A stretch of 64,000 nt of DNA from positions 1 through 64,000 of IMG/VR virus record IMGVR_UViG_3300024336_000005. One strand, written 5' to 3'. The position numbers and the translations under genes are program-made. Of the stretch, positions 33,064 through 61,157 are shown one piece after another. The notes under the pieces are model-generated. The model did no database searches, had not been told where the DNA came from, and saw nothing but the letters and a program-made list of their open reading frames with translations. The stretch's first letter is position 1, and each line of letters starts with the position of its first letter.

Positions 33064-33087
33064 TATATTCTCCTATTGGAAGATGGC

Positions 33088-33111: not shown

Positions 33112-33119
33112 TTACCTAA

Positions 33120-34484: not shown

Positions 34485-34496
34485 TACTATAGCTCC

Positions 34497-35672: not shown

Positions 35673-35690
35673 TTCCTAAAATTCCTCCAA

Positions 35691-44412: not shown

Positions 44413-44420
44413 TTAATTCC

Positions 44421-45089: not shown

Positions 45090-45091
45090 CG

Positions 45092-46551: not shown

Positions 46552-47429
46552 GCGTGGTAAGCCAATGCCTCCTGGCCAAAGGCAGATCTTGCATTCATTT
46601 GGCTCCTTCTAATGGACTGCATCGCCCTCTGCCTCATTGTGGCAGCATAATCAGAGTCAATGAACTGACTCTTTCTGTTTACGGACCTGCGTCCATGTCT
46701 ATTCCCGAACTCTGAGATCTTCCATACCCCTTCAGCGGCCATCATGCCAACTTCAGCTCCTATAAGGCCACCAGCCACAAGGCCGATGCCTCCTACAAGC
46801 ATCCCACCCTTAGGAACCATCTTAATGGCGGCTGCGGCTCCAAGCCCAGCGCCAGTAATCGCTCCAGCCTCGGCACCAAGGTTGCTTGCAAGCTGCCTGG
46901 GCATCCCGTTTATGGGATCAAAGATATTATCATCAGTCATCATGGCCGACAGACCTGCCGTGGCGCCAAGGCTGACCATGCTTTTCATCTGCCAAAGGTT
47001 ATGTCCGACTCTGCCTAGGTGCTCTCCTGCTGATCTGGCTCCGAATCGCCTAACAGCTTGACCTGTCTTGGGGTTAATCTGCTTCCCGTACTGCTTAACA
47101 AACTCTTCTGGCTCGTAGCCCATTGCTCTTGCATAGTTTTGAGCTCCCATCCTATTGGGACCCATCTCTGCCATGGTGTCAGCAGTAGCCCTGAAGGCAT
47201 TCATTTGGGACTGCTCGAACCTTCTGTGAGCTCGATAGCCCCCCACTCCGCTCCGTAGCCCTCCGCTTATTCCTGCAACGCCATGATAGCCAGCCTTGGC
47301 AATCGTGCTGGCACCAAGGAAGGCAGCAGTCCCTCCGAAGGCGGCACCGCGATAAACCGCATTCCCCATCTTCCCAACAATATTTCTTTGGGCCTCACTA
47401 TGTGCTTTAAGCTTATCCCACCAATTCAT
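46548..47429 (-). CDS. Gly/Ala-rich hydrophobic protein (possible ejected/internal virion protein)
   Basis: GxxxG-rich transmembrane-like segments. Confidence 0.45.
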   Translation of the reverse strand: MNWWDKLKAHSEAQRNIVGKMGNAVYRGAAFGGTAAFLGASTIAKAGYHGVAGISGGLRSGVGGYRAHRRFEQSQMNAFRATADTMAEMGPNRMGAQNYARAMGYEPEEFVKQYGKQINPKTGQAVRRFGARSAGEHLGRVGHNLWQMKSMVSLGATAGLSAMMTDDNIFDPINGMPRQLASNLGAEAGAITGAGLGAAAAIKMVPKGGMLVGGIGLVAGGLIGAEVGMMAAEGVWKISEFGNRHGRRSVNRKSQFIDSDYAATMRQRAMQSIRRSQMNARSAFGQEALAYHA

Positions 47430-48031
47430 TAGTCATTCCAACCAAAGCCAAATGGGTTTACAAAGTCAGCTGCGGCCATGCCTCCATAGACCATGGCGCC
47501 TCTAGCGCCTACGGCTCCAGCACGAGCCCAACCTCCTGGGCCGTTTGCCTTAGCTCCTAGCTCCGCTGCTGAGCCCCAATTCCAGGCACTTCTTGCCATC
47601 ATCTTAGCCTCACCCCAGGCTTGTCCAGCCGCTCGACCTCCAGGACCGACTTCTTTCTGTCCGGATATCGCGAGGAGTGAGCTGGAGGGACCATGGGCAG
47701 ACATAATATTCTCACGTGCCTTCCCGAACCTTCCTGGAGCAGCCTTAACCTGCCCAAGCCCAAACAAACTGCTCATGCCACCCTCGCCTTGAAATGGCTC
47801 TTTCATGGCCGTGAATCTGGTTGAGGCGGCGGTCCTTGTGGCGCCGGCTGCCCTTCTGGCGCGATCCCTTGCTTCTGCCGCCTTCCTCTTAACGGTTGGC
47901 CCGTGCGCCGCGCGTGCTTTCCTGGCCCTATTAAGCCCAGATCTACCACCTCTTCTGAGGCGCCGACCCTCGCGTACGGTCACCTCAGCGACATTGCCTA
48001 CTAGATTCCCTGCCTTATTTGCTAGTCCCAT
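47429..48031 (-). CDS. Arg/Ala/Gly-rich protein (possible internal virion protein)
   Basis: Composition; translationally coupled. Confidence 0.45.
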   Translation of the reverse strand: MGLANKAGNLVGNVAEVTVREGRRLRRGGRSGLNRARKARAAHGPTVKRKAAEARDRARRAAGATRTAASTRFTAMKEPFQGEGGMSSLFGLGQVKAAPGRFGKARENIMSAHGPSSSLLAISGQKEVGPGGRAAGQAWGEAKMMARSAWNWGSAAELGAKANGPGGWARAGAVGARGAMVYGGMAAADFVNPFGFGWND

Positions 48032-48032
48032 G

Positions 48033-51000
48033 TTAATTCCCTATATGGTGTTGAGTCCAATTTTCTGAATTCATCATCCTCTTACTCCAGCCGCGTGCAA
48101 TCCTATTGCCTTCCATAAGGCCTCGCCTTGTGCGCGTGCTGCGCTTCACTGTATTAATAACCCCGTCTATTCGGTATCCAGACCCAAAGTCTCCAATGTT
48201 TGCTTGCCTGTTGGCTTGGGCCCATCCGTGTCTGAGTCCCTCCTGAATTGTGGAATCATCACGTCCTCCCGCAGCCTGCATTGCAGAAAGCTCAGTATCT
48301 GGATTCCGAATTCTGTGGACAATGCTCGAGGCCCTAAAATTTCCAAATAGTCTTTCCAGATCTGTAAACGCATTGTGCGTAATCTTTCTTTTCGCTCCCT
48401 TCTGGATATTGTGAGCCGCGCGCCAACCAGCATCTGACCACATTCCAGTCTCAGATTCGACTGCTTCCTCCTGAGCTCTGTTAAAAGCACGCGCATCGAA
48501 TATTCTGTCTGAAGCCTTTCCAAAAGGTAGACTCGCCGCTGCCCCTTGGCGGACGAGCTGCAAGTTGAGGTTAACATTGTCATCGCCAAACAAAAGAGCG
48601 GGAGTACGACCATATGTAGATCCTGCGTTGGGATCGAAGACGGCAGTCATCGAGCTCTGTGAGGCCATTAGCTCTTCGAGCATCTCCGTTGCTCTCTCAC
48701 CATATGGCTGATCTTGGAATACTTTATTAGATGCATACGCATCACCATGGGAGACCTCGGGAGCATCAATGCCGGCTAGACGTAAGGACATAGTATTCCC
48801 ACCGCTAAGCATAAGCTTTACGGTGTCTGCATCTTCTATCTCATAGTCTGTGACCTTCTGCTGCCCTATCTGACCTTCATACCTCCTGTTCAAAGCATGG
48901 TCTAGCCCCTGCCAAGGGGAACCGAAGTCGGTCTTTTTGCTTCTGGTGGCGTCGGCAACACCCCCTCCGTGAGCCATGCCCTCCTCTGGATTTAGAGCGC
49001 GGTTGGAGCGGACCTGTCTCTCATAGAGAGTGCTAACAACCTGCTTGTCGCGCTTCAGTGCAGCCTCTTCTGATATCGCTCTGATCTGACGGCCGCCGCC
49101 CTCCTTCCTTACGATCTCACCATGACGCTTTCCTTTGCCTGTCCATTGTCCCAATGGACTCCCGTAGTCAATAATGCCAATGCGCTTGGCGCCTCTCTGG
49201 TCCGCAGTTAAGACAATGTTGCCAAAGTTGAGATCTCCATGACGCATCTGCTCGTGTAGTGTTGATACAGCTTCGTTTATGCGACCCAAGCCAACCTCTC
49301 TTAGCTCAGAAGGGGACAGGTCCTTCAAGGGAGACCCTTCAAAGTATTCCATGTCCATCTGTCCCTGGCGACCAGGACGGGCGGCATAAACATCTGGCCC
49401 AACTGAGGAGCTAGCCTTGCTTGTCAAGGCAACCTCTGATTTAGGAATTCTCCCGGCCTTACGAACAAAATTGAATGACTGGCCTCTGAAATAGCCCTCC
49501 ATGAGGTGAGCTTCGCCACTTGCTCCGGCACCAAGCCTCTTTACGCGAGTAGCAAGGGCGATGGCATCTTGGAAGCCAGGAGATCCTGTCATCTCAGCAA
49601 AGGTCTCTGCAGCTCTAGTCAATCCCCTGAGGGCATTCCAGCCAGAACCAAAGTCAGCAGTCTTCTTTCTTGCTGGCCCCTTAAAGCCTTCGTGCCTAAG
49701 TCCTTCGATGACGTTATAGGCATCATCCTTCCCAGAAATCTTTCCTGGCTCTATCTGCATCCCGGGATAATAGCCCTGAAACTTAGACATGCGCTGGTGA
49801 GCACGACCGGCGTCGGACATGTCAAGATATCTAACTTTTCCTGCAACAATATCATCTGCAGCAGCCTGTGTGTGCAATAGCCTCCCAGAGGATGCTTCTA
49901 TGACCGCTTGGTTGGCAGTCATGTCTGTCCCCTTGAAGAATGAGGGAAGGTCCTTTTGTATTTGCACATCAAAGAAGCTTTGATGCTTGGCCATTGCCCC
50001 ATATACCTTATCTAAGCCGATGTCTCCTGTAACAAGAAGGTCAATGTCCTTAGACTGTCTTGTCCATTCGGGACGAAGACTTGACACCAGATGCTCTCTG
50101 GCCACCCCTCCCTTAACATATAGATTGCCCCCCATTCCTGCAATCTCATCTGCCAATGCACCAACGCCAGCAATAGCAGCAGGGTTGTTCGGGTCTGATA
50201 GGCCCGCAGCCTCTGCGTTTGAGAATGCTGCAGATATGCCACCTTCTTCCTTTACAATCTTTGTTGGTCGTCCAATGTGCGACGGGTTATAATCCTCCGT
50301 CGAAACTCCTTTCAGAACTCTTACTTCAACTTCTCCCCTTAACCGGCGCGTTCCGCGCCGCAAGCCCTCAACCTTCTTTTGATGGAAAAAGTCTCTTAGA
50401 ACTCCGGTCGCGGAAAAGCCCTCCAACTCTCTCCTTTCTATGAAATCAGTTCGACTCAGGGTCACGGCGTCAGTCTTTGGATCGTAACTTCTGACAGCGT
50501 GCGGCTTGTCTGCGTGTCCGATTCTCGGCATCCGAAAATCTCTCGGCTTCATATCAGTCCGCAGAATCTTTTTTTCTGTGCTTTCGAATCGGATGCTTTG
50601 GTTACGAGTGTAGAGGTGTGCGCCCTCAGACATATCTAATTTAGAGAGCTCTTTTTCAGGTATAAAGAAGAAGGTGCTATCAGATACAGAGCTGTTTCCA
50701 GTAGCGGAACTTTTCGCGTACGCAGACAGAAGCTCCTCACGGCTCCCCTTTTGCATTCGGCTTCCGTAAACGCCAACACTCCCTGCTTCATTCAAAGCAT
50801 TGGAGCCTCCTGGAAGGAGTCGCTGCGTCTCGAGAATTGAATCGTGGGCGTAATTTGGAGCACCATGAGAGAACCCCGCTCCTAAATCTAAAGTGCTTTT
50901 TGGCGTCCATGTTTTTTCAGGCCCTGCGGCTCGTATATTAATCTTTTCTGCGGCTGCTTCGTATCGTTCAATTTCCGGTCTTGACTTCTTAAAGGCCGCC

Positions 51001-51869
51001 AGATTCTTTCTATAATTCCGCCCCCCTTTGCCCAAGAGCCCCTTTGCCGCCTTTAGCCCAAGACCTATCCCGGCTCCGCCGAGTGCAGCTGTAAGGGACG
51101 GGGTTATACTGCTATAGGCCGCCATTCCGCCGACCGCCGCGCCCCATCCAGCTCCTCCGCTGCCAATATATGAGAAAGCCCTGTCAAGATCTAGGAGGGG
51201 GATCTCTCTCCTTAGTTCTCCATATCCATATTTTTTGGTTCTTGACCAAAGGTCCTTAGCCTTGGTTAAGGCCCCCCTCCAACCAGAACCAAAGTCAGTA
51301 TTGTGCTTACGGGTTTGCCCAGCAAAACCCGCATGCTTCATTCCCTCTATATAGTTATATTCATCATCAGAACCAGAAAAGAGTAGCCCAACGCCAGCAA
51401 TAGCAGCTGCTCCTCCAGCTAGAAGTCTCCAGTTGCTTTTGATCCCACGCATGGCACGTGCGCTAGTGCCCTCTGGAGCCTCCTTAGCGGCTGTTGCAAC
51501 CGAGGCGGTAGGGTTGGATGGATTAGGGGCAGAAGCCCCCACAGAGGGGGCTGTAGGGGCAGCAAGGGCCATATCATCGGGGTGCCATGGCAGACTTGTC
51601 TCAGCGGTTGGAACATGAGGAACATGAGCCCATCCTCCTGGAGCTCTAGGGGCGTATACCTTGTGCTCTGGGGTGCCCCAAGCAGGAGCAGTTCCAGTGG
51701 TCTTATATATACTGTCTAGAACATCCCAAGCGGCCTGACCTCTTGCACCCTTTAGCTCGTCTGCAGAGAGTCCCCCCATGAGCTTAGAGACTCGCTTCGC
51801 ATGAGCGCCCAGATCATTAGAGGCATCCCAATTGGTTTTACCTGCTGCGAAGTCGTCTATGGCTGACAA
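48033..51869 (-). CDS. Multi-domain polyprotein: nucleotidyltransferase + Ser/Thr kinase + SNase nuclease, separated by repeated linkers
   Basis: NTase YVKGGVARE..KDIDLLV..DMTANQ; kinase LGAGASGEA..VRK..MEY..HGDLNFGNI..IIDYG; SNase DADTV..LRLAGIDAPE..QPYG..YGR..LVRQG..GMW; four EGxxH...DFGS repeats. Confidence 0.85.
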   Translation of the reverse strand: MSAIDDFAAGKTNWDASNDLGAHAKRVSKLMGGLSADELKGARGQAAWDVLDSIYKTTGTAPAWGTPEHKVYAPRAPGGWAHVPHVPTAETSLPWHPDDMALAAPTAPSVGASAPNPSNPTASVATAAKEAPEGTSARAMRGIKSNWRLLAGGAAAIAGVGLLFSGSDDEYNYIEGMKHAGFAGQTRKHNTDFGSGWRGALTKAKDLWSRTKKYGYGELRREIPLLDLDRAFSYIGSGGAGWGAAVGGMAAYSSITPSLTAALGGAGIGLGLKAAKGLLGKGGRNYRKNLAAFKKSRPEIERYEAAAEKINIRAAGPEKTWTPKSTLDLGAGFSHGAPNYAHDSILETQRLLPGGSNALNEAGSVGVYGSRMQKGSREELLSAYAKSSATGNSSVSDSTFFFIPEKELSKLDMSEGAHLYTRNQSIRFESTEKKILRTDMKPRDFRMPRIGHADKPHAVRSYDPKTDAVTLSRTDFIERRELEGFSATGVLRDFFHQKKVEGLRRGTRRLRGEVEVRVLKGVSTEDYNPSHIGRPTKIVKEEGGISAAFSNAEAAGLSDPNNPAAIAGVGALADEIAGMGGNLYVKGGVAREHLVSSLRPEWTRQSKDIDLLVTGDIGLDKVYGAMAKHQSFFDVQIQKDLPSFFKGTDMTANQAVIEASSGRLLHTQAAADDIVAGKVRYLDMSDAGRAHQRMSKFQGYYPGMQIEPGKISGKDDAYNVIEGLRHEGFKGPARKKTADFGSGWNALRGLTRAAETFAEMTGSPGFQDAIALATRVKRLGAGASGEAHLMEGYFRGQSFNFVRKAGRIPKSEVALTSKASSSVGPDVYAARPGRQGQMDMEYFEGSPLKDLSPSELREVGLGRINEAVSTLHEQMRHGDLNFGNIVLTADQRGAKRIGIIDYGSPLGQWTGKGKRHGEIVRKEGGGRQIRAISEEAALKRDKQVVSTLYERQVRSNRALNPEEGMAHGGGVADATRSKKTDFGSPWQGLDHALNRRYEGQIGQQKVTDYEIEDADTVKLMLSGGNTMSLRLAGIDAPEVSHGDAYASNKVFQDQPYGERATEMLEELMASQSSMTAVFDPNAGSTYGRTPALLFGDDNVNLNLQLVRQGAAASLPFGKASDRIFDARAFNRAQEEAVESETGMWSDAGWRAAHNIQKGAKRKITHNAFTDLERLFGNFRASSIVHRIRNPDTELSAMQAAGGRDDSTIQEGLRHGWAQANRQANIGDFGSGYRIDGVINTVKRSTRTRRGLMEGNRIARGWSKRMMNSENWTQHHIGN

Positions 51870-51872
51870 GTG

Positions 51873-52733
51873 CTACTCCTTTTCCTCAGTAATCTGTGCC
51901 TGTAGTTGCTTAACTCTCTTCATTAGTTCAGACATGTGCACAGAAGCGTCCTTAACATTCTCACCCTCTCGAGCGGTCATGACTCTTTGTTCTCTTCTGG
52001 TCCCTACTAGTTCCTTACGAAGACGATCCTTCCGCGCCCACAACTTCTCCTTAATCTTCATAAGGTCAGCTACATCCTTTACATAGTTGTCTACAATGTC
52101 TCCCGCCTTAGTAGTTGTAGTACTAACAAGCTTCTCTTCTGTAAGTCCTTGCAGTTCAGGCTCCGACGCAAGCTTTGCGTTGACCCTGCTCTCTAATAGT
52201 TCTATCTCTGCAAGTTCTAGTATGAACCTTTGGTCTGTATACTCTTCCTCTCTTCCGGTCACATCAAACTCTATGGAAAGCTTTTGTACTGCATCATGTA
52301 GGATGTCTGTCTCTATTGGGCATGCCCTTCCTATTGGAACAACCCGACGACTCTCCCCTGATCTATCTATCTCCTCTTGGAGGCTTACATAAGGACAGGT
52401 GCGGGCACGGGGACAAACCTCTGGGCCCCAGCAGGTCATGATCTGCTGTATAGAAGCACCAGTCTTCATACGCTGGTGAGCGGTCCTTAGGCCGCGAGCT
52501 TCTTCAGCTGTGAGTTGAATATCAGTATAGGCGCCAGAGGCAAGCTTCATCCCGTCGAACCAGTTGTGCCTTACAACATCCCCGCCTTCAGTTATCGCTG
52601 TCCCATTAAATGAGACAAGTGCCATCTTATCTCCTTTGGGAACCTTCTCTAGTATAGGGAGCTTCTTAGGAGAAGGCTTCTCTTGGTCTACTATAGGAAG
52701 ACCATCTTCGTATTCTGGGATCCATTCATCCAT
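51873..52733 (-). CDS. Cys-motif + coiled-coil protein (possible terminase small subunit)
   Basis: CWGPEVCPRARTCP..CPIE; helical C-terminus; near the head of the operon containing terL. Confidence 0.35.
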   Translation of the reverse strand: MDEWIPEYEDGLPIVDQEKPSPKKLPILEKVPKGDKMALVSFNGTAITEGGDVVRHNWFDGMKLASGAYTDIQLTAEEARGLRTAHQRMKTGASIQQIMTCWGPEVCPRARTCPYVSLQEEIDRSGESRRVVPIGRACPIETDILHDAVQKLSIEFDVTGREEEYTDQRFILELAEIELLESRVNAKLASEPELQGLTEEKLVSTTTTKAGDIVDNYVKDVADLMKIKEKLWARKDRLRKELVGTRREQRVMTAREGENVKDASVHMSELMKRVKQLQAQITEEKE

Positions 52734-52999
52734 TACAACTTCTCCGCTAGCATCTTAACTAGTTCCTTAAACCTTTGATATTCTTCAGGTTGCTTCAACC
52801 AATCAATTACACACCTTCTTACGTAGGTGCAATCCATGGGGTCCTCTTTGGTCGTAGCTCGGAGCATGCCAGCGAACCTCTCTGCATAGAGAGGGCCTTC
52901 CATGAGTTTCTGTAGCTCGTGAATCAGGAGGATGTTGTTTAGTATGTCTTGGAGGGAGGAGCCGAGTTCGGCTCTGCATCTGGCATCTAGTGCGCTCAT
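52733..52999 (-). CDS. Hypothetical protein
   Basis: GAGG RBS; coupled to the next gene. Confidence 0.55.
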   Translation of the reverse strand: MSALDARCRAELGSSLQDILNNILLIHELQKLMEGPLYAERFAGMLRATTKEDPMDCTYVRRCVIDWLKQPEEYQRFKELVKMLAEKL

Positions 53000-53031
53000 A
53001 AGTGCCTCATAGGTTTTGTAAGGGATTACAA

Positions 53032-53061
53032 ATTATACCTTATTGCGGCGTTAGGAGGCAA
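53032..53061 (-). promoter_or_regulatory. Possible sigma70-type promoter
   Basis: Minus strand TTGCCT-N18-TATAAT upstream of the ORF starting at 52999. Confidence 0.4.
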
Positions 53062-53482
53062 CTGTGCGGAGGGATCCTTGCTTTAATTCTTCTAGTTGCG
53101 CGGGTGAGAGATTCATCTCAATGATAGAAGAAGTCTTCTTGTCACCAGACTCTGGCGGGTCTGGTGCTATCCACTTAAAGGCCATGGAGACAAGTGCGGC
53201 GGCGATGAGAGAAGCGACAATAGATATGACCGCCCACTTCCCACTAAAGGTCGCGCCGGTGGTCTCTAGCTCCCTCAACCTCTTCTCTTGATCTACGTCC
53301 TTCGATTCCAATACGTTGACCTTTACTTTTAGTTTGGTCAACTCCTCGGGATGATAGCCTATCATCCTGCCCTTAAGTTCTTGTACGTCCCCGCTTATCT
53401 TTTCATAGTTATCATTTAATCTTTCTAGTTCTTTTAGCACATGGCGGGACCACTCATTCCACCCATTTTGATCATTGCTCAT
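53051..53482 (-). CDS. Coiled-coil + single transmembrane protein (holin/XhlA-like)
   Basis: Coiled coil ending EKRLRELE, then WAVISIVASLIAAALVSMAF. Confidence 0.45.
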   Translation of the reverse strand: MSNDQNGWNEWSRHVLKELERLNDNYEKISGDVQELKGRMIGYHPEELTKLKVKVNVLESKDVDQEKRLRELETTGATFSGKWAVISIVASLIAAALVSMAFKWIAPDPPESGDKKTSSIIEMNLSPAQLEELKQGSLRTVAS

Positions 53483-53946
53483 TGTAGATCTCCCCGCTGT
53501 TTTTTGCTATTAGGGCAAATTTGACAAGGAGAGGGCCAGAGGCGACCAAAGGTATAGGTCTCACTCTCGTCATGCCTGGACCAGCTAGTCCAAAGAACTG
53601 TAACGTACTCCCCTTCTTTAGTCCTCAGCCGATTAGAAGTCACAAAGTACCCCAACTCTTGTGGACTTCTTGCATGCATAACCCTTTCGATTTTTTCCCT
53701 ATCCTCAGGATGAATGATATCGGAGATAGACCTCCCTTTAATTTCACTCTTTGAATACCCCAGTTCACGCAAGGCCCTGGGGTTGCAGTCTTCTATGATC
53801 AAATCGTTGAAGATAAAGATCATGTCAGGACAAGAGTTGTAGAAGTCCTCGAGCTGAGAATTCCTCTTTGCCAACTCATCGTCCCTTCTGTTCAAAGCTA
53901 TCGTTAGCTTCTTCAGTTCGGTCAGTGTTTTCATGATTACATCCAA
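53479..53946 (-). CDS. Stand-alone PAS-domain protein
   Basis: FYNSCPDMIFIF..IEDCNPRALRELGYSKSEIKGRSISDIIHPEDR...NRLRTKEGEY. Confidence 0.85.
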   Translation of the reverse strand: MDVIMKTLTELKKLTIALNRRDDELAKRNSQLEDFYNSCPDMIFIFNDLIIEDCNPRALRELGYSKSEIKGRSISDIIHPEDREKIERVMHARSPQELGYFVTSNRLRTKEGEYVTVLWTSWSRHDESETYTFGRLWPSPCQICPNSKKQRGDLQ

Positions 53947-54009
53947 TAGGCGGGAGTACGGTTCAATAACAATAGAAAGCCCTTCCGGTGCGGGACGAGA
54001 ATGGGTTCT

Positions 54010-54113
54010 AAAAAAATATGGGAAAGGGAGGGAAATATAGGGGAAAAATAAGGGAAGGCTGAAGGATTGAATATAGAGGAAAATAGGGAAAACATAGGAA
54101 AAATAAGGGAGGA
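54010..54113 (+). repeat. Purine-rich degenerate tandem repeat at the strand switch
   Basis: GGAAAAATAAGGGA exact at 54042-54055 and 54097-54110, with related units around them; G4-type motif at 54020-54043. Confidence 0.7.
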
Positions 54114-54274
54114 CCTAGTGTAAGTGTTGGGAGTAGTAGGGTACCTATCGGTGCGAGCCCCTACCCCGACGACTTGGATAGCATGTTGCTATCACACTGG
54201 GCATAACGTCCAACAACCAGAGAAGTAGCAGGCATATCGTCTGTCTTCTCTATGCATGACTTAGGAGTTATATC

Positions 54275-55081
54275 ATGCAGTCCATCATCACCTCCATCAT
54301 CGCCCTGTCCGATCACCTGTACCACGCCCTCATCAACGCGATCGACACGCAGGATGCTGTGGCGCGCTGCTACGATGCGATCTGGTACTACCACGCACAG
54401 GTCCGCATCGACAACGGGCACAAGACCGAGACCTTCACCCGTGAGGGTGACAGCGTCATGCGTGAGGTGGTGTACAACGCCTCCATCATGGGCAAGGCCA
54501 GTCGCAAGCTGGCTGTCACCGGTCACGCGCAGGTGCTCATGGATGTGAGCAAGCTGTCCTTCACCCACACCTATGCTCGTGAGCCCCAGGCACACACGAG
54601 TCAGGTGAAGGTCACCATCGTGTACCCTGCGGCCAAGGCTGAGCCCACTGACCTCGAGGTGCGCCTCGCCTACGAGGAGTGGATGAACATCCAGGGCCAC
54701 CTGGAGCCCAAGGAGGAGGCCAAGGCTGAGGCTGATGCTGAGGTGGTGGAGGATGAGCACGTGGTGGAGGACTACTGGTACCTCATGGAGGACTACACCA
54801 AGGAGGATGCCCTCCACCTGGAGCGCAGCACGATGGGCAAGGACCGTAAGGCGTGGGATAGGCCCAACCGGGTGCTGGAGGTGGCCATGGAGGCACAGGC
54901 CAAGGCCCGTGAGGAGGAGGCAGAGGCCCTGTACCAGAGGGAGATGGCTGAGGCCAAGGCCCTCTGGGAGGCCAAGGTTGAGCTCTTCAAGAAGGTGAAG
55001 GGTGGCATGCCCAAGTACCCCCGAACCCACTATGGTAAGCCCATGCCTCGGGCCTACTGGAAGGAGGTGTTCGGGGGCTAG
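54275..55081 (+). CDS. Hypothetical early protein
   Basis: AGGAG RBS, strong GC3 bias. Confidence 0.8.
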   Translation: MQSIITSIIALSDHLYHALINAIDTQDAVARCYDAIWYYHAQVRIDNGHKTETFTREGDSVMREVVYNASIMGKASRKLAVTGHAQVLMDVSKLSFTHTYAREPQAHTSQVKVTIVYPAAKAEPTDLEVRLAYEEWMNIQGHLEPKEEAKAEADAEVVEDEHVVEDYWYLMEDYTKEDALHLERSTMGKDRKAWDRPNRVLEVAMEAQAKAREEEAEALYQREMAEAKALWEAKVELFKKVKGGMPKYPRTHYGKPMPRAYWKEVFGG

Positions 55082-55311
55082 GTAGCATAGGTATGGTGAC
55101 CCCTCTTCGGAGGGGGCTCCATATGGGTACATGTGGGGTGTATGGTGTATGCCATATGCTACTACGTGTACCCATATGGGGTACTGTATAGGTAGTAGGG
55201 TATAGCCCTGCTACTGGTACCACTGGGCATACCACATGGGGTGGTGTGCTATAGCAGGGGGGTGTATAGCCCGAGCCCCCCTCTGTGTATAGTAGGGCAT
55301 AGGGGTACTAT
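55082..55311 (+). other. Highly structured intergenic region
   Basis: CCCCTC-TTCG-GAGGGG; long stem CCATATGGGTAC..GTACCCATATGG; GTAGTAGGG..CCCTGCTAC. Confidence 0.55.
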
Positions 55312-55515
55312 ATGTACGTCATCAAGACCGAGTGGGCCCGCTACGTGCGAGGGACGTTGAGGGACGTTGAGGTGCGCCTCAGCGTCGTGACCCACGAGGA
55401 GGCCAAGCGGCTTCTCCGCACTGAGGTCCCCCTCGTGGGGAGGTCCCTCCAGGGGATCTCCTCCCATGTGGGGGACCGACTGAGCGTCCCCACCTGGACG
55501 CTGGTCAGCGAGTAA
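55312..55515 (+). CDS. Hypothetical early protein
   Basis: GC3 bias; AGGGG RBS. Confidence 0.65.
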   Translation: MYVIKTEWARYVRGTLRDVEVRLSVVTHEEAKRLLRTEVPLVGRSLQGISSHVGDRLSVPTWTLVSE

Positions 55516-55615
55516 GGTGATGGGGCACACGACTGTCGTGAGACAGCCGTGTGTTTAAACCACAGGACCGGTCCAAAGTCCGGTCCAAGCAGCCCCAAGG
55601 GGCATAGGAGTAGTC

Positions 55616-55801
55616 ATGATTGATTCCACCAAGCGGGTCACCCTCGATGAGGTGTTGGAGTTGTCGGGTGTGGAGGACCAGAGGGTCTTCGCCTGGGAGC
55701 AGTGGGTCGTCAAGGGCAAGGGGGTCCAGGTGACCCTGGACGTCGACTTCGACGAGAAGACCCACAAGTACAAGGAGATCCACATCTTCATCGGGCGTTA
55801 G
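55616..55801 (+). CDS. Hypothetical early protein
   Basis: AGGAG RBS, GC3 bias. Confidence 0.75.
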   Translation: MIDSTKRVTLDEVLELSGVEDQRVFAWEQWVVKGKGVQVTLDVDFDEKTHKYKEIHIFIGR

Positions 55802-55810
55802 CGCCCGATG

Positions 55811-55951
55811 AGCCCTTCCCCACCGGGCTAAAGGTGGGTGTTCCACATAGGCGCATCAGGGGTAACACCTTGGATGCGTCTTATATGGGGCATAGGCACA
55901 TGTTGTGCCACCCCTTGGTGCAGGTACGCACCATACACGCCCTATTGGGCA
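55811..55951 (+). ncRNA. Structured element family 2, copy 1 (pseudoknot plus conserved stems)
   Basis: Shares its architecture and 20-nt/16-nt blocks with 56270-56406. Confidence 0.55.
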
Positions 55952-55971
55952 CATTAGATAGGAGCTCACCC

Positions 55972-56247
55972 ATGAGCAAGTCCAACGTCGGCAACGAGAG
56001 CCAGTTCATCAACTTCGTTAATGGTTTGTGCGCGGGAAGCCTGTTGCAGTTCGCCATCATCGGCCTCCACACGGCCGCCTGGAAGAAGGACCAGCTGGGG
56101 ACTGCCAGGCTCCGGCAGTTGGGCCAGTACCACGATGACACCACCAGCCGGTTGATCCTCTCCAACGGCGTCGTCGTGGACGTGGATTGGGGCTTCCAAA
56201 AGGGGCAGTCCGCCCATCGCCTCTGGTGGCGCGTGCGCTCTAACTAG
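55972..56247 (+). CDS. Hypothetical early protein (start MSKSN)
   Basis: AGGAG RBS; the codon bias begins here rather than at 55702. Confidence 0.7.
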   Translation: MSKSNVGNESQFINFVNGLCAGSLLQFAIIGLHTAAWKKDQLGTARLRQLGQYHDDTTSRLILSNGVVVDVDWGFQKGQSAHRLWWRVRSN

Positions 56248-56269
56248 AGCAGCGCAGGCCGCCTGAATA

Positions 56270-56406
56270 AGCCCTCTCCCCCGTCGGGCTACAATAGACG
56301 GGGGATCACATGAGGACATCAGGGGTAGCACCTTGGCGTTCTGATGTGGTTTCTAGGGACATGCCGTCCCCATTGGGCAGTTTCGCCCATCACGCCCTAT
56401 TGGGCA
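56270..56406 (+). ncRNA. Structured element family 2, copy 2
   Basis: Covarying pseudoknot and conserved blocks. Confidence 0.55.
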
Positions 56407-56424
56407 TACATGAAAGGCCATACC

Positions 56425-57012
56425 ATGGCTACCTTCATTCGTTCCTCCCTCCTCCTCGCCCTCCTGTTCATCTGTGCCGGTTGCGGCACCAACCCGATGG
56501 CCTTCGGGCCGTTGGGGTGTTTCGTTTTCTCGTTCATCTTCCTCTTGGCGGGGCTGATGCCCACTAAGGCGGTGATCAAGGACGACGACGAGGAGACCGA
56601 GACGATGTCCTCCCCTGAGTGGGAGGTCCAGGAGTTCCCCGCTCTGGAGATCAAGGGGGAGGTGTGCTGGCCCGAGTGGCTGGAGATCTGCGAGGAGGCC
56701 TGGACCGAGCAGGCCAAGGCTGATGAGAACGCCCGTTTGGCGGCGTGGATCGAGCAGAGCAAGGCCACCATCAGGACCCGACAGGCCGAGTCCAAGCGGA
56801 TCGGCAACTGGATTGAGCAGCAGCGCATCAAGCGGTGGGTCGCGGCCCAGGAGGAGAAGGCCGCCAAGAAGGCGTGGAAGGACGCTGAGTACGCCCGCCG
56901 CTGCAAGGCGGCGCGTCAGGCCTGCGTGCTCGCCGAGCAGGAGGCGCAGGATGAACCCCTCCTGGAAGAGAGGATCGAGGAGTTCCGAAAGGAGATCCTC
57001 TCCTCCCTCTAG
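56425..57012 (+). CDS. Membrane protein with a lipoprotein-like/TM N-terminus and coiled-coil C-terminus (start MATFIR)
   Basis: GAAAGG RBS; LLLALLFICAGC and a second hydrophobic stretch. Confidence 0.7.
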   Translation: MATFIRSSLLLALLFICAGCGTNPMAFGPLGCFVFSFIFLLAGLMPTKAVIKDDDEETETMSSPEWEVQEFPALEIKGEVCWPEWLEICEEAWTEQAKADENARLAAWIEQSKATIRTRQAESKRIGNWIEQQRIKRWVAAQEEKAAKKAWKDAEYARRCKAARQACVLAEQEAQDEPLLEERIEEFRKEILSSL

Positions 57013-57147
57013 TTTAGAATCACGATTCGATAGTCGTCCTGAGAGCTGGGACGTTAAACTGCTCACATTAGCAGCAACCCATGGTGGGAAGCTGCTTAAC
57101 TGGGGTAGCCAATCCCCAAGCCCCGTGATGGGGTAAAGGAGTATACC

Positions 57148-58197
57148 GTGAAGAACATTGCCAAGAAGATTGGTTTCGTCTTGGGTGCCGCGATCGGCAT
57201 CATCATGTTGGCCGTGATCGCGAAGTTCGTGCTGGGCATCGTCCAGCACCTGGTCACCATGGCCCTCCTGGCCGGACCCCTCCTGTTCGCCTTCCCCGCC
57301 GCTCGGCGGCGGGTGTTGGTGCTGCTGAACAAGAAGGGCCAGAAGCTCAAGGAGGCCATCGAGGGGACGCCCGCCTGGAAGGGGCGGCAGGGCGTCAAGG
57401 ACGCCATCCAGGCGGGGCTTGAGAAGCAGTGGGAGTCGTTCAAGTCGGCCGCCAAGGCCGACGTGGAGGGGGAGGAGACCCAGGAGTTGTGCGACGGGTG
57501 CGGGAACATCCCGTTCTCCTGCTCCTGCGCGACGATGTCGCCGGAAGATGTGGCTGAGGCCGTCTGGCAGATGGAGGGGGAGCCTGCGCCCTGGCAGCCC
57601 ACCCTAATCGAGGGTGGGCTGGGGGAGGCCGTGGAGCTGTGCCCGGTCTTCGGGGTGGCCAAGCACTCGTGCGCCGGTTGTGACAACGGGCAGCACGAGG
57701 ACCCCAACTTCGTGGACGAGATGGTGGATGATGACGGCATCCCCGCACCGAAGGACGGTCAAGTGGCGTGCTCCACCTGTGGGTGGCCCCATGGGCCGAA
57801 TGGGTGTCGCAACTGTGACGACCCCATCTGCCTTGGCCGGGACGATGATATGTACGAGTACTGCGGCGGGTGTGGCGAGACTTTCGAGAGCTGCCACTGT
57901 TGTGGCGAGCATGAGGCGGTGAAGGTGGAGGTCAAGGTGGAGGAGAGGCAGTGCTCCTGTTGTGCCATCGAGGGCAACGCGAGGACGGAGGCGTACTGTT
58001 GGTTCCACTCCGAGCAGGAGCGGGAGGGGGCGCTCCTGTCGGTGGCGGAGGCCGAGGAGTTGGCCATCTGCGTGAAGGCCGCGCAGGACGCCGTGCGACT
58101 CCTGGACGACCGCTTGGAGTGGGCCGCCAAGGCCCACGCAGGGACCGACTTCGACGCCTGGTGGGCCTGCCGTCAGGGTTGGAAGGGGGAGAAGTGA
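57148..58197 (+). CDS. Membrane-anchored Cys-rich (multi zinc-finger-like) protein
   Basis: Two N-terminal TM segments; CDGC..CSC, CSTC..CRNC, CGGC..CHCC and other Cys clusters. Confidence 0.75.
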   Translation: MKNIAKKIGFVLGAAIGIIMLAVIAKFVLGIVQHLVTMALLAGPLLFAFPAARRRVLVLLNKKGQKLKEAIEGTPAWKGRQGVKDAIQAGLEKQWESFKSAAKADVEGEETQELCDGCGNIPFSCSCATMSPEDVAEAVWQMEGEPAPWQPTLIEGGLGEAVELCPVFGVAKHSCAGCDNGQHEDPNFVDEMVDDDGIPAPKDGQVACSTCGWPHGPNGCRNCDDPICLGRDDDMYEYCGGCGETFESCHCCGEHEAVKVEVKVEERQCSCCAIEGNARTEAYCWFHSEQEREGALLSVAEAEELAICVKAAQDAVRLLDDRLEWAAKAHAGTDFDAWWACRQGWKGEK

Positions 58198-58385
58198 GGA
58201 AGCTGAGCTGCGAGAAGGCGGTCAGGCTTTTGGCCTGTGCCTCCACGGTGGCTGGCTACTACGGGCCTATCCCGCCGGTCAAGCGGGATGAACTGGTTCA
58301 GGCCCTCGGGGTGACGCCCGAGGAGATCGATGCCTGGTGGAACAACCAGATGAGCATCGAGTGGGACGGCGCCTCCAAGCACTAG
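58194..58385 (+). CDS. Small HTH/homeodomain-like protein
   Basis: GTGA overlap start; KRDELVQALGVTPEEIDAWWNNQ. Confidence 0.55.
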   Translation: MRKLSCEKAVRLLACASTVAGYYGPIPPVKRDELVQALGVTPEEIDAWWNNQMSIEWDGASKH

Positions 58386-58668
58386 TCCCACAGCCGTACC
58401 TAGTCCGGCATTATAATAGACTAGGACTCCCTCCTGTTATCACGATCTCCTATCGTGGTATGAGAAGGGTGCTGAACAAGTGCCCTTACAATCTGTTCTC
58501 CATGGGTCATGGAGGGTCTAGTGTGTACCCAACACACTCCCTGGCTCTAGGGTTACCAAGAGCTAGTATGCACAACCCCGGCCAAAAACAGGGGGAGGAT
58601 AATGGCGTGTAACCGACGCTGCAAGTCCCGTATGGGACTGTTGCCCGAAAGGGCAGAAAGGCTCCAAC

Positions 58669-59649
58669 ATGAGCACCAAGAACTTCGACCTCGCTCAGAT
58701 CCTCGCCGATGTCACCAGCATCAACTTGGAGGCGCTGGTCGCCTCCAAGAAGGCCAAGGAGGAGGCCGAGAAGGTCGCCTCGAAGGAGGCCAAGAAGGCC
58801 AGGGAGGAGGCCGCCGCTTGGGCGGCGGCCAAGGCCGAGGAGAAGGCCAAGGAGGAGGCCGAGAAGCGGGCCGACCTGGCCCGCCTCAACCGGGAGGAGG
58901 CGGCCAGGAAGGAGGCCGCCAAGAAGGAGGCCATGAAGGCCCGCGCGCGGCTGGAGCACAGCTCCTACAGGCTCGGGCTGCTGGAGGGCCGGGTGGCCCT
59001 CCTGAGTCAGATCCAGGAGAACCTGGGGCGCAAGCTCCAGGGTATGCTGGAGGGGACGGCGGCCCAGCTGGCCGCCAAGGCCGAGGAGTTCCAGGCGGCG
59101 CGGGAGGACCTGATGGAGGCGACCAAGCGCCTCCAGGAGGAGAAGGACCTGGTGGAGGATCAGCGGATCTCCTTCGGGGAGGTGCTCCCCTTGCCCCGCC
59201 ACCAGGAGGCCGGCCGTCGGGCCGCGCGGGTCGAAGGGGGCGGGGCCCTGAAGGAGATCCAGGAGGAGGCCTTCTTCGCGGCCATCGAGGCCAAGAAGGA
59301 GGCCAAGGTGGCGCAGGCCATCGAGGCCTCCGAGGAGCTGGAGGGGCTGCTGGCTCAGCTGTCCAGCCGGCCCCGGCGCTCCATCACCCGCGCCCTGAGC
59401 CGGGGGGACATCTCCCCCGCCAAGGCCGTGGAGGAGGCGAAGGCCGCCATCGAGGCGGCCAAGCGGGTCCACCAGTTCGAAAAGGTGGAGGTGGTGACGA
59501 CCAAGGTCGGCAGGGCCTCCACCTTGAGGGACCAGGACGCGGCCATCCGGATGGCCGCAAAGGGTAAGAAGCTCTCCAAGGAGGAGGGCAAGAGCTCCAA
59601 CCCGAAGAAGATTGCGAAGCTGCGCCGTAAGGCCGCGCAGAAGAAGTAA
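58669..59649 (+). CDS. Ala/Glu/Lys-rich coiled-coil protein with a basic tail
   Basis: GAAAGG RBS, GC3 bias. Confidence 0.8.
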   Translation: MSTKNFDLAQILADVTSINLEALVASKKAKEEAEKVASKEAKKAREEAAAWAAAKAEEKAKEEAEKRADLARLNREEAARKEAAKKEAMKARARLEHSSYRLGLLEGRVALLSQIQENLGRKLQGMLEGTAAQLAAKAEEFQAAREDLMEATKRLQEEKDLVEDQRISFGEVLPLPRHQEAGRRAARVEGGGALKEIQEEAFFAAIEAKKEAKVAQAIEASEELEGLLAQLSSRPRRSITRALSRGDISPAKAVEEAKAAIEAAKRVHQFEKVEVVTTKVGRASTLRDQDAAIRMAAKGKKLSKEEGKSSNPKKIAKLRRKAAQKK

Positions 59650-59658
59650 TCTTCTCTC

Positions 59659-59827
59659 TTGCCCCGCTGAATAAGCGGGGCGGTCCCCCTCGTGGGATCT
59701 AGGCTCATCACATAGGTGGTGGTCCTAGACGTCACGAGGGTAGCCGAATAGGTTGCCTCATGACAGGTGGCGCTGAACAAGCGCCGCCGCTTAGCTTTGT
59801 GCTGAATAAGCGCAGAGCTTTACATTT
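59659..59827 (+). ncRNA. Structured element family 1, copy A (four boxB-like hairpins and one long stem)
   Basis: Aligns with 60791-60964 with compensatory and G-U changes. Confidence 0.65.
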
Positions 59828-59985
59828 GGAAGCGCCCACCACCGGGGCGCATTAGTAAAATACCGGGGTTAGCGTTGCTAGAGCGCTAATTAAATGGCTT
59901 GCGTTGTGAGCCGCTGGCAAGGGGATACTCCCCACAACGGAGCAATCATGCTCCACTTTGGTCGCAAGACCTGAAAGGCCACATC

Positions 59986-60783
59986 ATGGCCATCTTCAAC
60001 ACCATCAAGTCCTCCGCCTCCGCCACCGCCGAGAAGGGCTTGCTCGCCCTCGGGCGGGCCAGCTGCAGCCTCAACCTCCGGAGCCCCATGCTCCGGAAGT
60101 TGAACGCAGCGCCCTTGATGGCGGTGGCGCCCTCGCACATGCGGGGGGCGTGTGAGGAGCACATGGAGCGCATGAACAAGCGCTCCATGGAGGCCTGGGA
60201 GCAGGACTCCCTCGTGGGTATGGCGACTTACATCGCCGAGAACCCGGAGCCCCGGAAGGAGCTGGAGGACTGGATGGCCTTCGCCTGCCGGGTGGCCGCC
60301 TACCGGGCGGCCCAGGTGGGCGACGTCACCCAGGCGCTCGCCGGGATGGCTTCCCGTGCAGGGCTGAGCCGCACGACGGCCAACCTCTGGGGCAAGACGC
60401 GGGGTCTTGATGACTTCGCCGATGCCCTGGAGGCCCACGCAACCGTGGGCGACTGCAAGTGGTGCCAGCCGCACCCCTGTGGTTGCCACGCCAAGGCGGG
60501 CACGTGCCGCACTTGCGACATCACCATCTTCAGCGACAACCGGGGGTACGACCGGTCCATCTGCGTGCACTGCGATGAGGACCGCGTCCGCATCGAGGCC
60601 GACGTCGAGGCGTGGCTGGAGATGGCCCAGGAGAGGTTCAGCTCCTCCTCGGCCCTGAGCGTGGGGGAGCAGCGGGAGTGGATGGAGATGATGGTGAACA
60701 CCTTCATCCCCGGCCAGGTGGTGTTCACCTGGAGCGAGACGGTGGAGACGGGGGACGTCTACGAGGGTCCCATCCCCTTCTGA
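59986..60783 (+). CDS. Hypothetical protein with Cys clusters (start MAIFN)
   Basis: GAAAGG RBS; CKWC..CGC, CRTC, CVHC; acidic C-terminus ending IPF. Confidence 0.75.
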   Translation: MAIFNTIKSSASATAEKGLLALGRASCSLNLRSPMLRKLNAAPLMAVAPSHMRGACEEHMERMNKRSMEAWEQDSLVGMATYIAENPEPRKELEDWMAFACRVAAYRAAQVGDVTQALAGMASRAGLSRTTANLWGKTRGLDDFADALEAHATVGDCKWCQPHPCGCHAKAGTCRTCDITIFSDNRGYDRSICVHCDEDRVRIEADVEAWLEMAQERFSSSSALSVGEQREWMEMMVNTFIPGQVVFTWSETVETGDVYEGPIPF

Positions 60784-60790
60784 TAGTATT

Positions 60791-60964
60791 TTGCCCCGCT
60801 GAATAAGCGGGGCGGGCTTAGCTCTTGCTGAGCTCTAGACTCATCCCTACGGGGGTGGCTCTAGACATTAGCAAGAGCCGCTGTGTAAGCGGTAGTAGCT
60901 GATGGTTGTGGCGCTGAGCAAGCGCCACTTTGGAGCCTTGCTGAATAAGCAGGGCTTTACATTT
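60791..60964 (+). ncRNA. Structured element family 1, copy B
   Basis: Same order of stems as copy A; both end in GCTTTACATTT. Confidence 0.65.
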
Positions 60965-61157
60965 TGTGCCATGGGTCATGGCCGGCTTGGACTACCGTTT
61001 AGTCCAGGGCTTTGGTGGAGTAGCCCTAAACACTCCACCCTCATGATACTGAGGTAGTATCAAACCTCTAACCGTAGGTAACGGTAAGTTGGTATTTATT
61101 ATGTCCCCCGCTTGGTAAGCGGGTGCCAACGGACACAATCCTCGAAAGGGATTTACC

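Follow-up and report, generated by a model that had tools for sequence, protein, structure and literature searches.

At about 54 kb in this viral genome, strand, base composition and codon usage all change within a few hundred nucleotides. The locus raises the question whether this break belongs to the phage or to its assembly and, if it is real, why the genes on either side are written in such different synonymous codons. The window analyzed here comprises the first 64 kb (64,000 nt) of a 204,008-bp IMG/VR record with a CheckV completeness estimate of 100%, i.e., a complete genome of about 200 kb, and the end of the window falls inside a region of high GC3.

The change that the first-pass annotation had described by eye was recovered by measurement. 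To the left of 53,946, every long ORF is on the minus strand, the genes from 54,275 onward are on the plus strand, and sliding GC steps from about 0.47-0.51 to 0.58-0.65. Codon usage flips likewise (GC3 0.51 versus 0.91; ENC 53 versus 33): A-ending codons decrease from 25.7% to 2.8%, AGA from 0.41 to 0.03, ATA from 0.23 to 0.01, and CTA from 0.26 to 0.02. The left block has almost no intergenic space (962 non-coding nt in 53.9 kb), and the spacers on the right are indeed long (135-471 nt) and structured; folding z-scores relative to dinucleotide-shuffled controls are -5.4, -8.6, and -10.0. All genes were called from ORFs, and the calls are approximate.

The suddenness of the change is the sole point in favor of a chimera, i.e., two unrelated genomes fused near 54 kb, which had been named as the alternative together with the provision that nothing might span the junction. 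Another IMG/VR record matches at 100% identity over positions 51,158-74,721 and hence across the junction, the stretch is present in 13 seawater metagenome runs, and an 8,299-nt contig from run X10, which is not the source of the record, aligns from position 53,847 to past 57,000 with zero mismatches and bridges 53.9-54.3 kb. Neither alternative joints nor loose ends were detected at the junction in any run inspected. Moreover, a 1,188-amino-acid (aa) protein from the right-hand side was found by word search on 10 contigs, the longest of 204,398 bp, the right-hand boundary of the high-GC3 region is gradual, and independently assembled relatives show the same architecture. In view of the identical second record, the 13 metagenomes and the bridging contig, the abrupt flip at 53,947-54,274 is real, and a chimeric assembly is so improbable that it can be dismissed. 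A sudden change in composition along a viral contig need not mean misassembly or contamination.

What did not stand is the description as a two-compartment genome. The complete record consists of a minus-strand structural block, a plus-strand island of about 30 kb to which the high GC3 is confined, and a plus-strand middle block:

1..53946, minus strand, late/structural block (ORF map, PHROG/Pfam matches, and codon statistics; GC3 0.51, A-ending codons 25.7%)
33120-34484, minus strand, major head protein (PHROG match)
37630-39702, minus strand, portal (PHROG match)
42448-44412, minus strand, large terminase (PHROG match)
48033-51869, minus strand, SNase-domain protein of 1,278 aa (PF00565)
54,275 to ~83.6 kb, plus strand, high-GC3 island (GC3 0.91 in the first 11 kb, A-ending codons 2.8%)
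84-182 kb, plus strand, middle block (GC3 0.47; three tRNAs and a tmRNA at its start)

The terminase, portal and major head protein bear out the earlier assignment of the left block to late genes. The right-hand side is not a single compartment, as most of the plus-strand arm has ordinary codon usage and the GC3 of the middle block, 0.47 over 98 kb, is close to that of the left block. This third compartment had been missed because the window stops inside the island, whose GC3 is patchy and fades between 65 and 84 kb.

Based on sequence similarity of head, portal and terminase, the genome is that of an uncultured marine tailed jumbo phage and distant kin of the 0305phi8-36-like group. In tblastn, its major head protein shares 27-30% identity, across 81-90% of the length, with those of Bacillus phage 0305phi8-36, Acinetobacter phage ME3, and Moorella phage MTATph1, and it shares with these jumbo myophages a genome size of about 200 kb and a DNA polymerase III alpha-type replicase. 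The kinship is distant, and the island protein examined is unmatched in any cultured phage. The photosynthesis-related search targets psbA and hli are absent from the genome, and a scan of bacterial and archaeal genomes for a host, based on an alignment of the SNase protein, returned ordinary nucleases only, the matches being driven by a generic motif. The proposal that late genes are transcribed by different polymerases found no support, as a six-frame search with working controls detected neither a multisubunit RNA polymerase (PF00623) nor sigma region 2 (PF04542). The T7-type RNA polymerase model PF00940 had no six-frame match either, but it also missed 14 of 14 control genomes and is hence uninformative. 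Two weak matches to sigma region 4 were obtained, one of them inside an intein-containing polymerase segment. RNA run X15 yielded four short contigs, all from the late block, which are no evidence of timing.

Both gene arms begin at the spacer between the left block and the island, and the divergent start of two transcription arms is the best explanation for this arrangement. The spacer contains two conspicuous elements:

53947..54274, no strand assigned, divergent junction spacer of 328 nt, GC 0.45, no long ORF (sequence and alignment with the junctions of relatives)
54014..54103, plus strand, purine-rich tract with a period of ~11 nt and AAATATAGGG / AGGGAAAAATA units (tandem repeat finder)
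54152..54159, plus strand, invariant core of the TGCGAGCC motif (comparison with relatives)

Comparable purine-rich tracts are present in the junction spacers of relatives L008, L009, and L010, and the TGCGAGCC motif occupies the same site, where the early arm begins, in nine or more distinct relatives, some of which lack the island. RNAalifold gave no pairs common to the motif regions of the relatives. Stems drawn by hand around the motif did not align among them and were dropped.

The genes of the island within the window, all with refined starts, are as follows:

54275-55081, plus strand, island gene
55312-55515, plus strand, island gene
55972-56247, plus strand, island gene
56425-57012, plus strand, island gene (ORF 56344-57012 with a weak match to phrog_6271 "toxin," E value 0.0018)
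57148-58197, plus strand, island gene
58669-59649, plus strand, island gene
59986-60783, plus strand, island gene
61158-64724, plus strand, island gene encoding the 1,188-aa protein, extending beyond the window

In this part of the island (54275..64000, 9.7 kb), GC3 is 0.86-0.96, A3 is 0.028, and ENC is 33. A GAAAGG...ACC-ATG start context is common to all island genes. A Pfam scan of 14 larger island proteins assigned a family to none of them, and the first ten have no PHROG family either, except for the weak phrog_6271 match. Two giant island proteins had no match in the protein atlas. For the 1,188-aa protein, the largest of these ten, tblastn found no match among cultured phages, a word search of 5.8 billion proteins returned only the protein itself, and an exhaustive HMMER search of 1.84 billion representatives revealed no other relative. 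We regard the island as a set of fast-evolving orphan genes, which its codon usage flags as probable immediate-early genes for host takeover or anti-defense.

The long spacers between these genes carry RNA elements:

55516..55583, plus strand, predicted type-P5 twister ribozyme (Rfam RF02684, 50.7 bits versus a gathering threshold of 37.6)
58465..60959, plus strand, seven GC-stem spacer hairpins with the loop CTGA[A/G][T/C]AAG (pattern and stem scan, MFE folds)

The match to RF02684 is full-length (model positions 1-58) and directly follows the stop codon of ORF 55312-55515, and a second copy with 48.4 bits is present in the island of relative L010. By match to sequence and structure the element is a type-P5 twister, for which self-cleavage is predicted. 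The hairpin loops start at 58472, 59667, 59773, 59802, 60799, 60914, and 60941, with a weaker copy at 56263; shuffled sequences led us to expect 0.3 per strand by chance. In the folded hairpins, C-U...A-G pairs close a pentaloop of GAAUA, GAACA, or GAGCA. We take these hairpins to be reminiscent of lambdoid boxB/nut elements with their short GC stem and GNRA-like pentaloop. No Rfam model matched these hairpins, their loop motif is absent from the islands of the relatives, and sigma-70-type promoters showed no excess over shuffles in the island.

The GC excess of the island is purely synonymous. GC1/2/3 are 0.615/0.427/0.909 in its first part versus 0.557/0.433/0.510 in late genes, so GC2 is equal, and so is the amino acid make-up (GARP share 0.281 versus 0.284; K/(K+R) 0.62). 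ENC is 33, compared with 53-55 in the other blocks, and GC3 is 0.91, compared with 0.51 and 0.47. The spacers of the island have a GC content of 0.44-0.65 (0.55 versus 0.44-0.47 elsewhere) next to third positions of 0.9-0.98. Both A3 (0.028) and T3 (0.070) are depleted, but A3 two to four times more than T3, which fits the fact that NNU codons share a tRNA with NNC, whereas NNA codons require their own. Whether C or G is preferred at the codon end depends on the codon family (chi-square 130, P = 8e-25), in a pattern that agrees with that of the island of relative G001 (r = 0.89). NCG codons are under-used, and dinucleotide effects could be part of the cause of these family-specific preferences.

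The scan of the whole genome proposed in the first-pass annotation revealed 32 tRNA genes, all located at 84,334-132,122, and the array begins where the island ends. Three tRNAs precede a tmRNA (85,869-86,490), the remainder of the array is interspersed with RNA-repair genes, and replication genes follow. At the first tRNA, median GC3 drops from 0.76 to 0.51. Twelve of the 32 tRNAs have anticodons starting with U and are cognate to A-ending codons; the NNA codons they read account for 22% of codons in late genes, 17% in the middle block, and 2% in the island. GGA also rises, from 0.11 in the island to 0.30 and 0.34 later, although the phage has no tRNA-Gly, which indicates that the increase in A-ending codons is general and extends beyond those supplied by phage tRNAs. 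Recoding of stop codons was considered and rejected: ORF coverage of the late block is 0.98 under table 11 without any gain from stop readthrough, and the same holds for G001 in spite of a tRNA with a CUA anticodon. Read in the standard code, the late blocks are open over 96-98% of their length.

The same split was sought in relatives and found: islands are present in L008-L011, G001, G002, G003, and other IMG/VR contigs, and in G001 to G003, as in the genome studied here, the island ends where the tRNA array starts (in G001, the order is island, tmRNA, 19 tRNAs). The bias recurs at the same position even in a relative with a background GC of 0.33. The island genes of the relatives are non-homologous to those described above in the parts compared, and the gene content near the junction is fully replaced between relatives that share 33-60% identity in their late proteins. 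The largest gap was observed in G003 (GC3 of 0.78 in the island versus 0.24 in late genes; GC of 0.57-0.69 against a background of 0.30-0.38), which has just 7 tRNAs, so that tRNA supply alone may not explain AT-rich late genes. Low-GC relatives lack the island, and G005, the one checked as a whole, has a single tRNA. The "direct terminal repeat" of G002 measures 127 bp, consistent with an assembly overlap.

Our preferred explanation, to which we give slightly better than even chances, is that the island is an immediate-early module written in codons read by host tRNAs, whereas later genes use A-ending codons served by phage tRNAs. It builds on direct observations, namely, the architecture, the synonymous bias, the fit between codons and tRNAs, and the conservation in relatives. 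Early timing is suggested by the place of the island at the start of the arm and upstream of the tRNAs; we presume that the host prefers G/C-ending codons and that tRNA supply exerts the selection. The rightward arm would open with about 30 kb of orphan immediate-early genes whose synonymous sites selection keeps G/C-ending, nearly excluding the A-ending codons that need U34 tRNAs of their own. Since such codons are nearly excluded, the island would be translatable from the existing tRNA pool of the host as soon as the DNA enters. Three tRNAs, the tmRNA and the remaining array with its RNA-repair genes would come next, after which the replication genes and then the structural genes on the other arm could use A-ending codons freely, 12 of them being read by phage tRNAs.

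Selection might instead act on the GC content of the first-expressed, perhaps first-entering, DNA or mRNA in order to evade AT-binding xenogeneic silencers, drop AT-rich restriction or nuclease targets, or stabilize early mRNA, with the signal falling on third positions as the only sites free to vary. The strong depletion of both A3 and T3, the slightly GC-richer spacers filled with GC-stem hairpins, the GC-rich island of G003 with only 7 tRNAs, and the likewise GC-richer leading regions of plasmids (bioRxiv 10.1101/2025.04.03.647016) agree with this idea. Nevertheless, the spacers, where promoters or silencer sites would lie, are raised by merely 8-10 GC points compared with about 40 at third positions, a requirement for double-strand GC does not predict the excess depletion of A3, the choice of C versus G is family-specific, and the island stops at the tRNA array in all four genomes named. 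We therefore regard this as an unlikely full account, but given the strong T3 depletion, selection for GC as such may contribute.

A hypervariable hotspot that is refilled with genes from high-GC hosts or phages and retains the composition of its donors is distinctly less probable. The replaced gene content near the junction, the orphan status of every island gene tested and the patchy GC3 at 65-84 kb would fit. However, a donor-like composition would be visible at all codon positions, in amino acids and in non-coding DNA, and that of the island is not: GC2, GARP and K/(K+R) match the phage and are unlike a high-GC proteome, and the spacers have about 0.5 GC. No donor is visible for the 1,188-aa protein among 5.8 billion or 1.84 billion proteins, position and bias recur in many relatives, including the one on a 0.33-GC background, and a single translation-start context is used across the island genes. 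We consider it very unlikely that the island reflects a regional mutational bias, either through GC-biased repair or conversion near an origin or through transcription-associated mutation in a strongly transcribed early operon. The cumulative GC skew changes direction at the junction, in line with an origin or a switch in transcription direction, and GC3 falls from the junction outward (Spearman -0.72, P = 4e-9), but genes equally near to the junction on its left have a GC3 of 0.44-0.56, spacers of about 0.5 GC lie beside third positions of 0.9-0.98, and codon preferences are family-specific.

Beyond the preferred explanation of a host-readable early module, we tentatively propose, as a possibility with the balance tilted against it, a clade-wide "two-dialect" genome with an early module in the host dialect, a switch of tmRNA, tRNAs and RNA-repair genes, and a remainder that depends on phage tRNAs. 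If so, it would represent a synonymous-codon counterpart of stop-codon recoding, the phage could tolerate or even cause a loss of host tRNAs (anticodon nucleases, phage-driven shut-off) and still translate, and the ribozyme and hairpin arrays would process early transcripts. It has long been asked why phages carry tRNAs, and most of the evidence is weak and drawn from whole genomes. In the present case, a strong signal is confined to one block, with GC3 gaps of 40-54 points in several complete genomes and island genes that are non-homologous where compared. Relatives with islands and low-GC relatives without them provide natural replicates and controls with which to examine if the timing of phage gene expression is shaped by tRNA supply. 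In addition, where overall GC misleads, the codon preference of the host may be read from the composition of the island, which could aid host prediction.

A parallel in logic is found in recoded phages, in which, according to a 2022 Nature Microbiology report, early genes reportedly keep the standard code and suppressor tRNAs permit recoded late genes. The genome is partitioned alike, with early genes readable by the host and phage tRNAs enabling later ones, but in the present phage the synonymous choice switches and not the meaning of a codon. Three further systems set precedents for the preferred explanation. The leading regions of conjugative plasmids are codon-adapted, GC-richer and rich in anti-defense genes, and codon adaptation falls away from the entry point (median CAI 0.34 versus 0.27; bioRxiv 10.1101/2025.04.03.647016). 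The likeness lies in the first-expressed part, which is suggested here by the position of the island; plasmids show a modest effect without tRNAs. In cyanophages, an "adaptation" strategy that matches host GC and codons has been distinguished from a "specialization" strategy with an AT-richer genome and tRNAs, mostly with U-starting anticodons, for host-rare codons (Limor-Waisberg et al. 2011, PMC3152331). These phages, which face GC-rich hosts, are marine as well, but their strategies divide whole genomes by phage family, whereas here both occur in one genome, by block, with the tRNA array at the block boundary, and psbA and hli are lacking. Differences in codon usage between early and late genes, with phage tRNAs best suited to the late ones, are known from phages (Mioduser et al. 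2017, PMC5683454; Shigella phage Sf14, PMC12482277). In Sf14, GC3 is 39% in early and 32% in late genes. Compared with this gap, the one described here is about 91% versus about 51% (78% versus 24% in G003), and the island is contiguous, starts sharply, and is conserved in position.

The first-pass annotation placed an abrupt flip of strand, GC content and codon usage at 53,947-54,300, and all three were recovered. GC content steps from ~0.47-0.51 left of 54 kb to 0.58-0.65 on the right, the last long minus-strand ORFs end at 53,946 and plus-strand genes start at 54,275, and A-ending codons drop from 25.7% on the left to 2.8% over the right block's first 11 kb, with the family shares of AGA, ATA and CTA falling from 0.41, 0.23 and 0.26 to 0.03, 0.01 and 0.02. 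The left block is as tightly packed as had been noted (962 non-coding bases in 53.9 kb), and the right-block spacers are indeed long (135-471 nt) and structured (folding z of -5.4, -8.6 and -10.0 versus dinucleotide shuffles). The proposed two-compartment genome held for the flip at the junction but not genome-wide, where ORF-based gene calls, used throughout, gave three compartments:

182.5-204 kb and 1-53.9 kb, minus strand: structural block, GC3 (G+C share at third codon positions) 0.51; large terminase, portal protein and major head protein in its left block
54,275 to ~83.6 kb, plus strand: high-GC3 island, GC3 0.91 over its first 11 kb and mean 0.72 over 65-84 kb
84-182 kb, plus strand: middle block, GC3 0.47

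The source record (204,008 bp, IMG/VR, complete by CheckV, the window being its first 64 kb) is an uncultured marine jumbo phage; the major head protein is 27-30% identical to counterparts of 0305phi8-36-like jumbo phages, and the junction stretch is present in 13 seawater metagenomes. The late block also encodes a giant protein of 1,278 aa (48033-51869, minus strand) with a staphylococcal-nuclease (SNase) domain near the C-terminus, to which many relatives (P0003-P0033) add a protein-kinase domain; because the gene sits beside the terminase, its position suggests a virion-carried, injected enzyme.

The bias of the island is synonymous and codon-specific, because the GC excess is confined to one codon phase (third positions 0.85-0.98 versus 0.44-0.65 in the spacers between the same genes), GC2 (0.427 in the first ~11 kb versus 0.433 in late genes) and the Gly+Ala+Arg+Pro share (0.281 versus 0.284) are matched, A-endings are depleted more strongly (0.028) than T-endings (0.070), and four-fold boxes differ by family in their choice of C versus G (chi-square 130, p 8e-25). 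The island has an effective number of codons of 33, down from 53, and its C-versus-G box preferences correlate with those of the island of G001, a related phage (r = 0.89). Along the plus-strand arm GC3 declines (Spearman -0.72, p 4e-9), with a median of 0.76 before the first tRNA and 0.51 after it.

The same split recurs in relatives, which are metagenome-derived sequences without hosts. Relatives of the SNase-domain protein lie on ~130-208 kb contigs, four of which carry the SNase-to-terminase block, a strand flip 2-4 kb upstream and then a high-GC3 block (GC3 0.7-0.96, A3 <=0.10, versus 0.25-0.56 and 0.2-0.35 in their late genes; A3, A share at third positions). No homology of our island proteins to the relatives' islands was detected in the junction-proximal 5-8 kb compared. 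In IMG/VR contigs with the SNase protein and a baseline GC of 0.44-0.54, 15-58% of the windows upstream of the late operon showed extreme phase-GC and none downstream did; members with a GC of 0.30-0.42 had no such windows. Inteins occur in the terminase and other late genes of relatives. Whole records of related phages are arranged as follows:

G001, 189.6 kb: island of ~21-24 kb, then tmRNA, then 19 tRNAs
G003, 158 kb, baseline GC 0.30-0.38: island with GC 0.57-0.69 and GC3 0.78 versus 0.24 in late genes, then 7 tRNAs
G002: island of ~12 kb, tRNA near its downstream end
G005, GC 0.36: no island, one tRNA

Three alternatives were weighed against these data. Chimerism, the alternative raised in the first-pass annotation, fits poorly, since a second IMG/VR record (143 kb) is 100% identical across 51,158-74,721 and, in the seawater run X10, which carries no possible-source flag, a single 8,299-nt contig starts within the last minus-strand gene at 53,847 and continues past 57,000 with zero mismatches. 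Short contigs of runs X11 and X12 cover 53,699-54,104, and a 1,188-aa island protein is found on 10 contigs, the longest of 204,398 bp. Although this read evidence consists of low-depth Logan assembled contigs and not raw reads, no alternative joints or loose ends were seen in these contigs in any run, and taken together with the relatives of the same layout it leaves no room for a chimera at ~54 kb. A donor-derived composition fits poorly as well: long residence in a high-GC genome shifts genes at all three codon positions and towards arginine, and the island genes are without this signature, as GC2 and the Gly+Ala+Arg+Pro share resemble those of late genes, and lysine is favored over arginine (K/(K+R) = 0.62). 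Regional mutation bias or drift in base composition likewise fits poorly with spacers of ordinary GC beside third positions of extreme GC.

A tRNA scan of the full genome with ARAGORN returned 32 phage tRNA genes, ~30 of them confirmed by Rfam, the first exactly at the island end; RNA genes and RNA-repair enzymes are located as follows (genome coordinates; L003, L012 and L015 are stretches of the same genome):

84,334-132,122, plus strand: 32 tRNA genes
85,869-86,490 (L003:11869-12490), plus strand: tmRNA (Rfam), close to where the tRNA array begins
96785-98146: RNA ligase, among the tRNAs
102773-104416: Ro60/TROVE protein with vWA domain, among the tRNAs
91-106 kb and 160-162 kb (L003, L012, L015): RNA-repair set as a whole, mixed with the tRNA array and also including HD and calcineurin-type (Metallophos) phosphoesterases
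160147-160923: RlaP, of the RNA-repair set

Twelve tRNAs have U-starting anticodons and read AAA, CAA, GAA, ATA, TTA, CTA, GTA, TCA, CCA, ACA, GCA and AGA, which account for 22% of the codons in late genes, 17% in middle genes and 2% in the island. For the Leu, Val, Ser, Pro and Ala four-fold boxes the U-starting tRNA is the sole phage tRNA; for Thr a G-starting one is present besides. The repair set suggests that damaged tRNAs or other RNAs are repaired during infection. The tmRNA measures 622 nt versus a 374-position model, owing to a large pseudoknot-region insertion, and was not called by ARAGORN; the G001 copy was (178,621-179,012, minus strand, tag GTESAPLALAA). Where ARAGORN gave a four-letter anticodon (tgta at 112,781-112,868, plus strand; gttg at 10,411 in G003), the anticodon loop is taken to have eight nucleotides. 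At the island end of G001 lies a tRNA with a CUA anticodon (amber-suppressor-type; 177,750, minus strand), without any sign of TAG recoding in that phage, and stop-codon recoding in general was checked and is not present. Downstream genes encode PurA, a GMP-reductase/IMPDH-type protein, DNA ligase, class II ribonucleotide reductase, PhoH, ThyA, a primase-helicase, a 284-aa reverse transcriptase (RVT_1, E 4e-21; 139,503-140,357, plus strand; L014:5503-6357) adjoining a ThiF-family protein in the middle block, and DNA polymerase III alpha in pieces (PHP, NTPase, finger, HhH/OB; 163,092-169,359, plus strand; L015:9092-15359), one with an intein containing a LAGLIDADG endonuclease.

Part of the 328-nt junction is a purine-rich tract repeating every ~11 nt, and the junction and the island spacers contain several further elements:

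54,152-54,159, plus strand: invariant TGCGAGCC core with semi-conserved flanks
55,516-55,583, plus strand: predicted type-P5 twister self-cleaving ribozyme (Rfam), directly 3' of a stop codon
58465-60959, plus strand: seven hairpins with GC stems and GAAUA-type pentaloops; a weaker copy at 56263
L010:3115-3168 (contig of a relative), minus strand: second twister, directly after a stop codon in an equivalent kind of early-arm spacer

The TGCGAGCC core stands at the early-arm start of at least nine relatives, irrespective of whether they have an island and despite no other nucleotide similarity (among them L008, L009, L010, L101, L124, L135, L137 and L158); no consensus RNA structure was found around it across relatives, and it may be a DNA-level site, e.g., a promoter or transcription start. 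The genes flanking the two twisters are non-homologous. The hairpin loops, CTGA[A/G][T/C]AAG, fold as GNRA-like pentaloops, occur on the plus strand of our phage's island only and presumably resemble lambdoid boxB. The leaders of two neighboring island genes share ~20-30 nt segments (55936-55953 and 56393-56410, plus strand), e.g., CACGCCCTATTGGGCA and, further upstream, CATCAGGGGTA[A/G]CACCTTGG; their 5' untranslated regions appear duplicated. Ribozyme, hairpins and repeated leaders point to a possible cleavage and stabilization of long early transcripts.

The island proteins themselves gave few clues. Ten larger proteins of the first 14 kb matched no Pfam family and, besides one weak match, no PHROG family, four further proteins, including one of 1,129 aa, matched no Pfam family, and the 1,188-aa protein found only itself in a word search of 5.8 billion proteins and a HMMER search of 1.84 billion representatives. 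Many have a high content of Glu, Lys and Ala; a lipoprotein-like N-terminus is seen in one, another is Cys-rich, and all island genes share the start context GAAAGG...ACC-ATG. The otherwise unrelated products of 58669-59649 and 61158-64724 (plus strand) have near-identical N-termini (MSTKNFD.../MSNKNFD..., i.e., MS[TN]KNFD).

The most economical reading is a host-readable immediate-early module followed by phage-supplied tRNAs for later genes. The island would be this module, its codons staying readable by the host tRNA pool through exclusion of A-ending ones; the phage would next supply tRNAs, tmRNA and RNA-repair enzymes, after which A-ending codons would be open to later genes. The earlier suggestion that phage tRNAs may serve late genes agrees with the codon fit, but not with the later increase of A-ending GGA, which has no phage tRNA; this and the few tRNAs of G003 are weak points. 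Different polymerases for late genes, suggested alongside, found no support in RNA polymerase searches. A serious rival is selection acting directly on the GC content of the DNA or mRNA expressed first, because T-endings are depleted in the island too. The host-readable module with later tRNA supply would unite in one genome the two strategies that, according to Limor-Waisberg et al. (PMC3152331), belong to separate families of cyanophages. Early/late codon differences reported previously (PMC12482277, PMC5683454), e.g., a GC3 of 39% in early and 32% in late genes of Sf14 (PMC12482277), are of the same kind, but the contrast is far stronger in our phage, and plasmids offer a parallel to the island in their codon-adapted leading regions (bioRxiv 10.1101/2025.04.03.647016).
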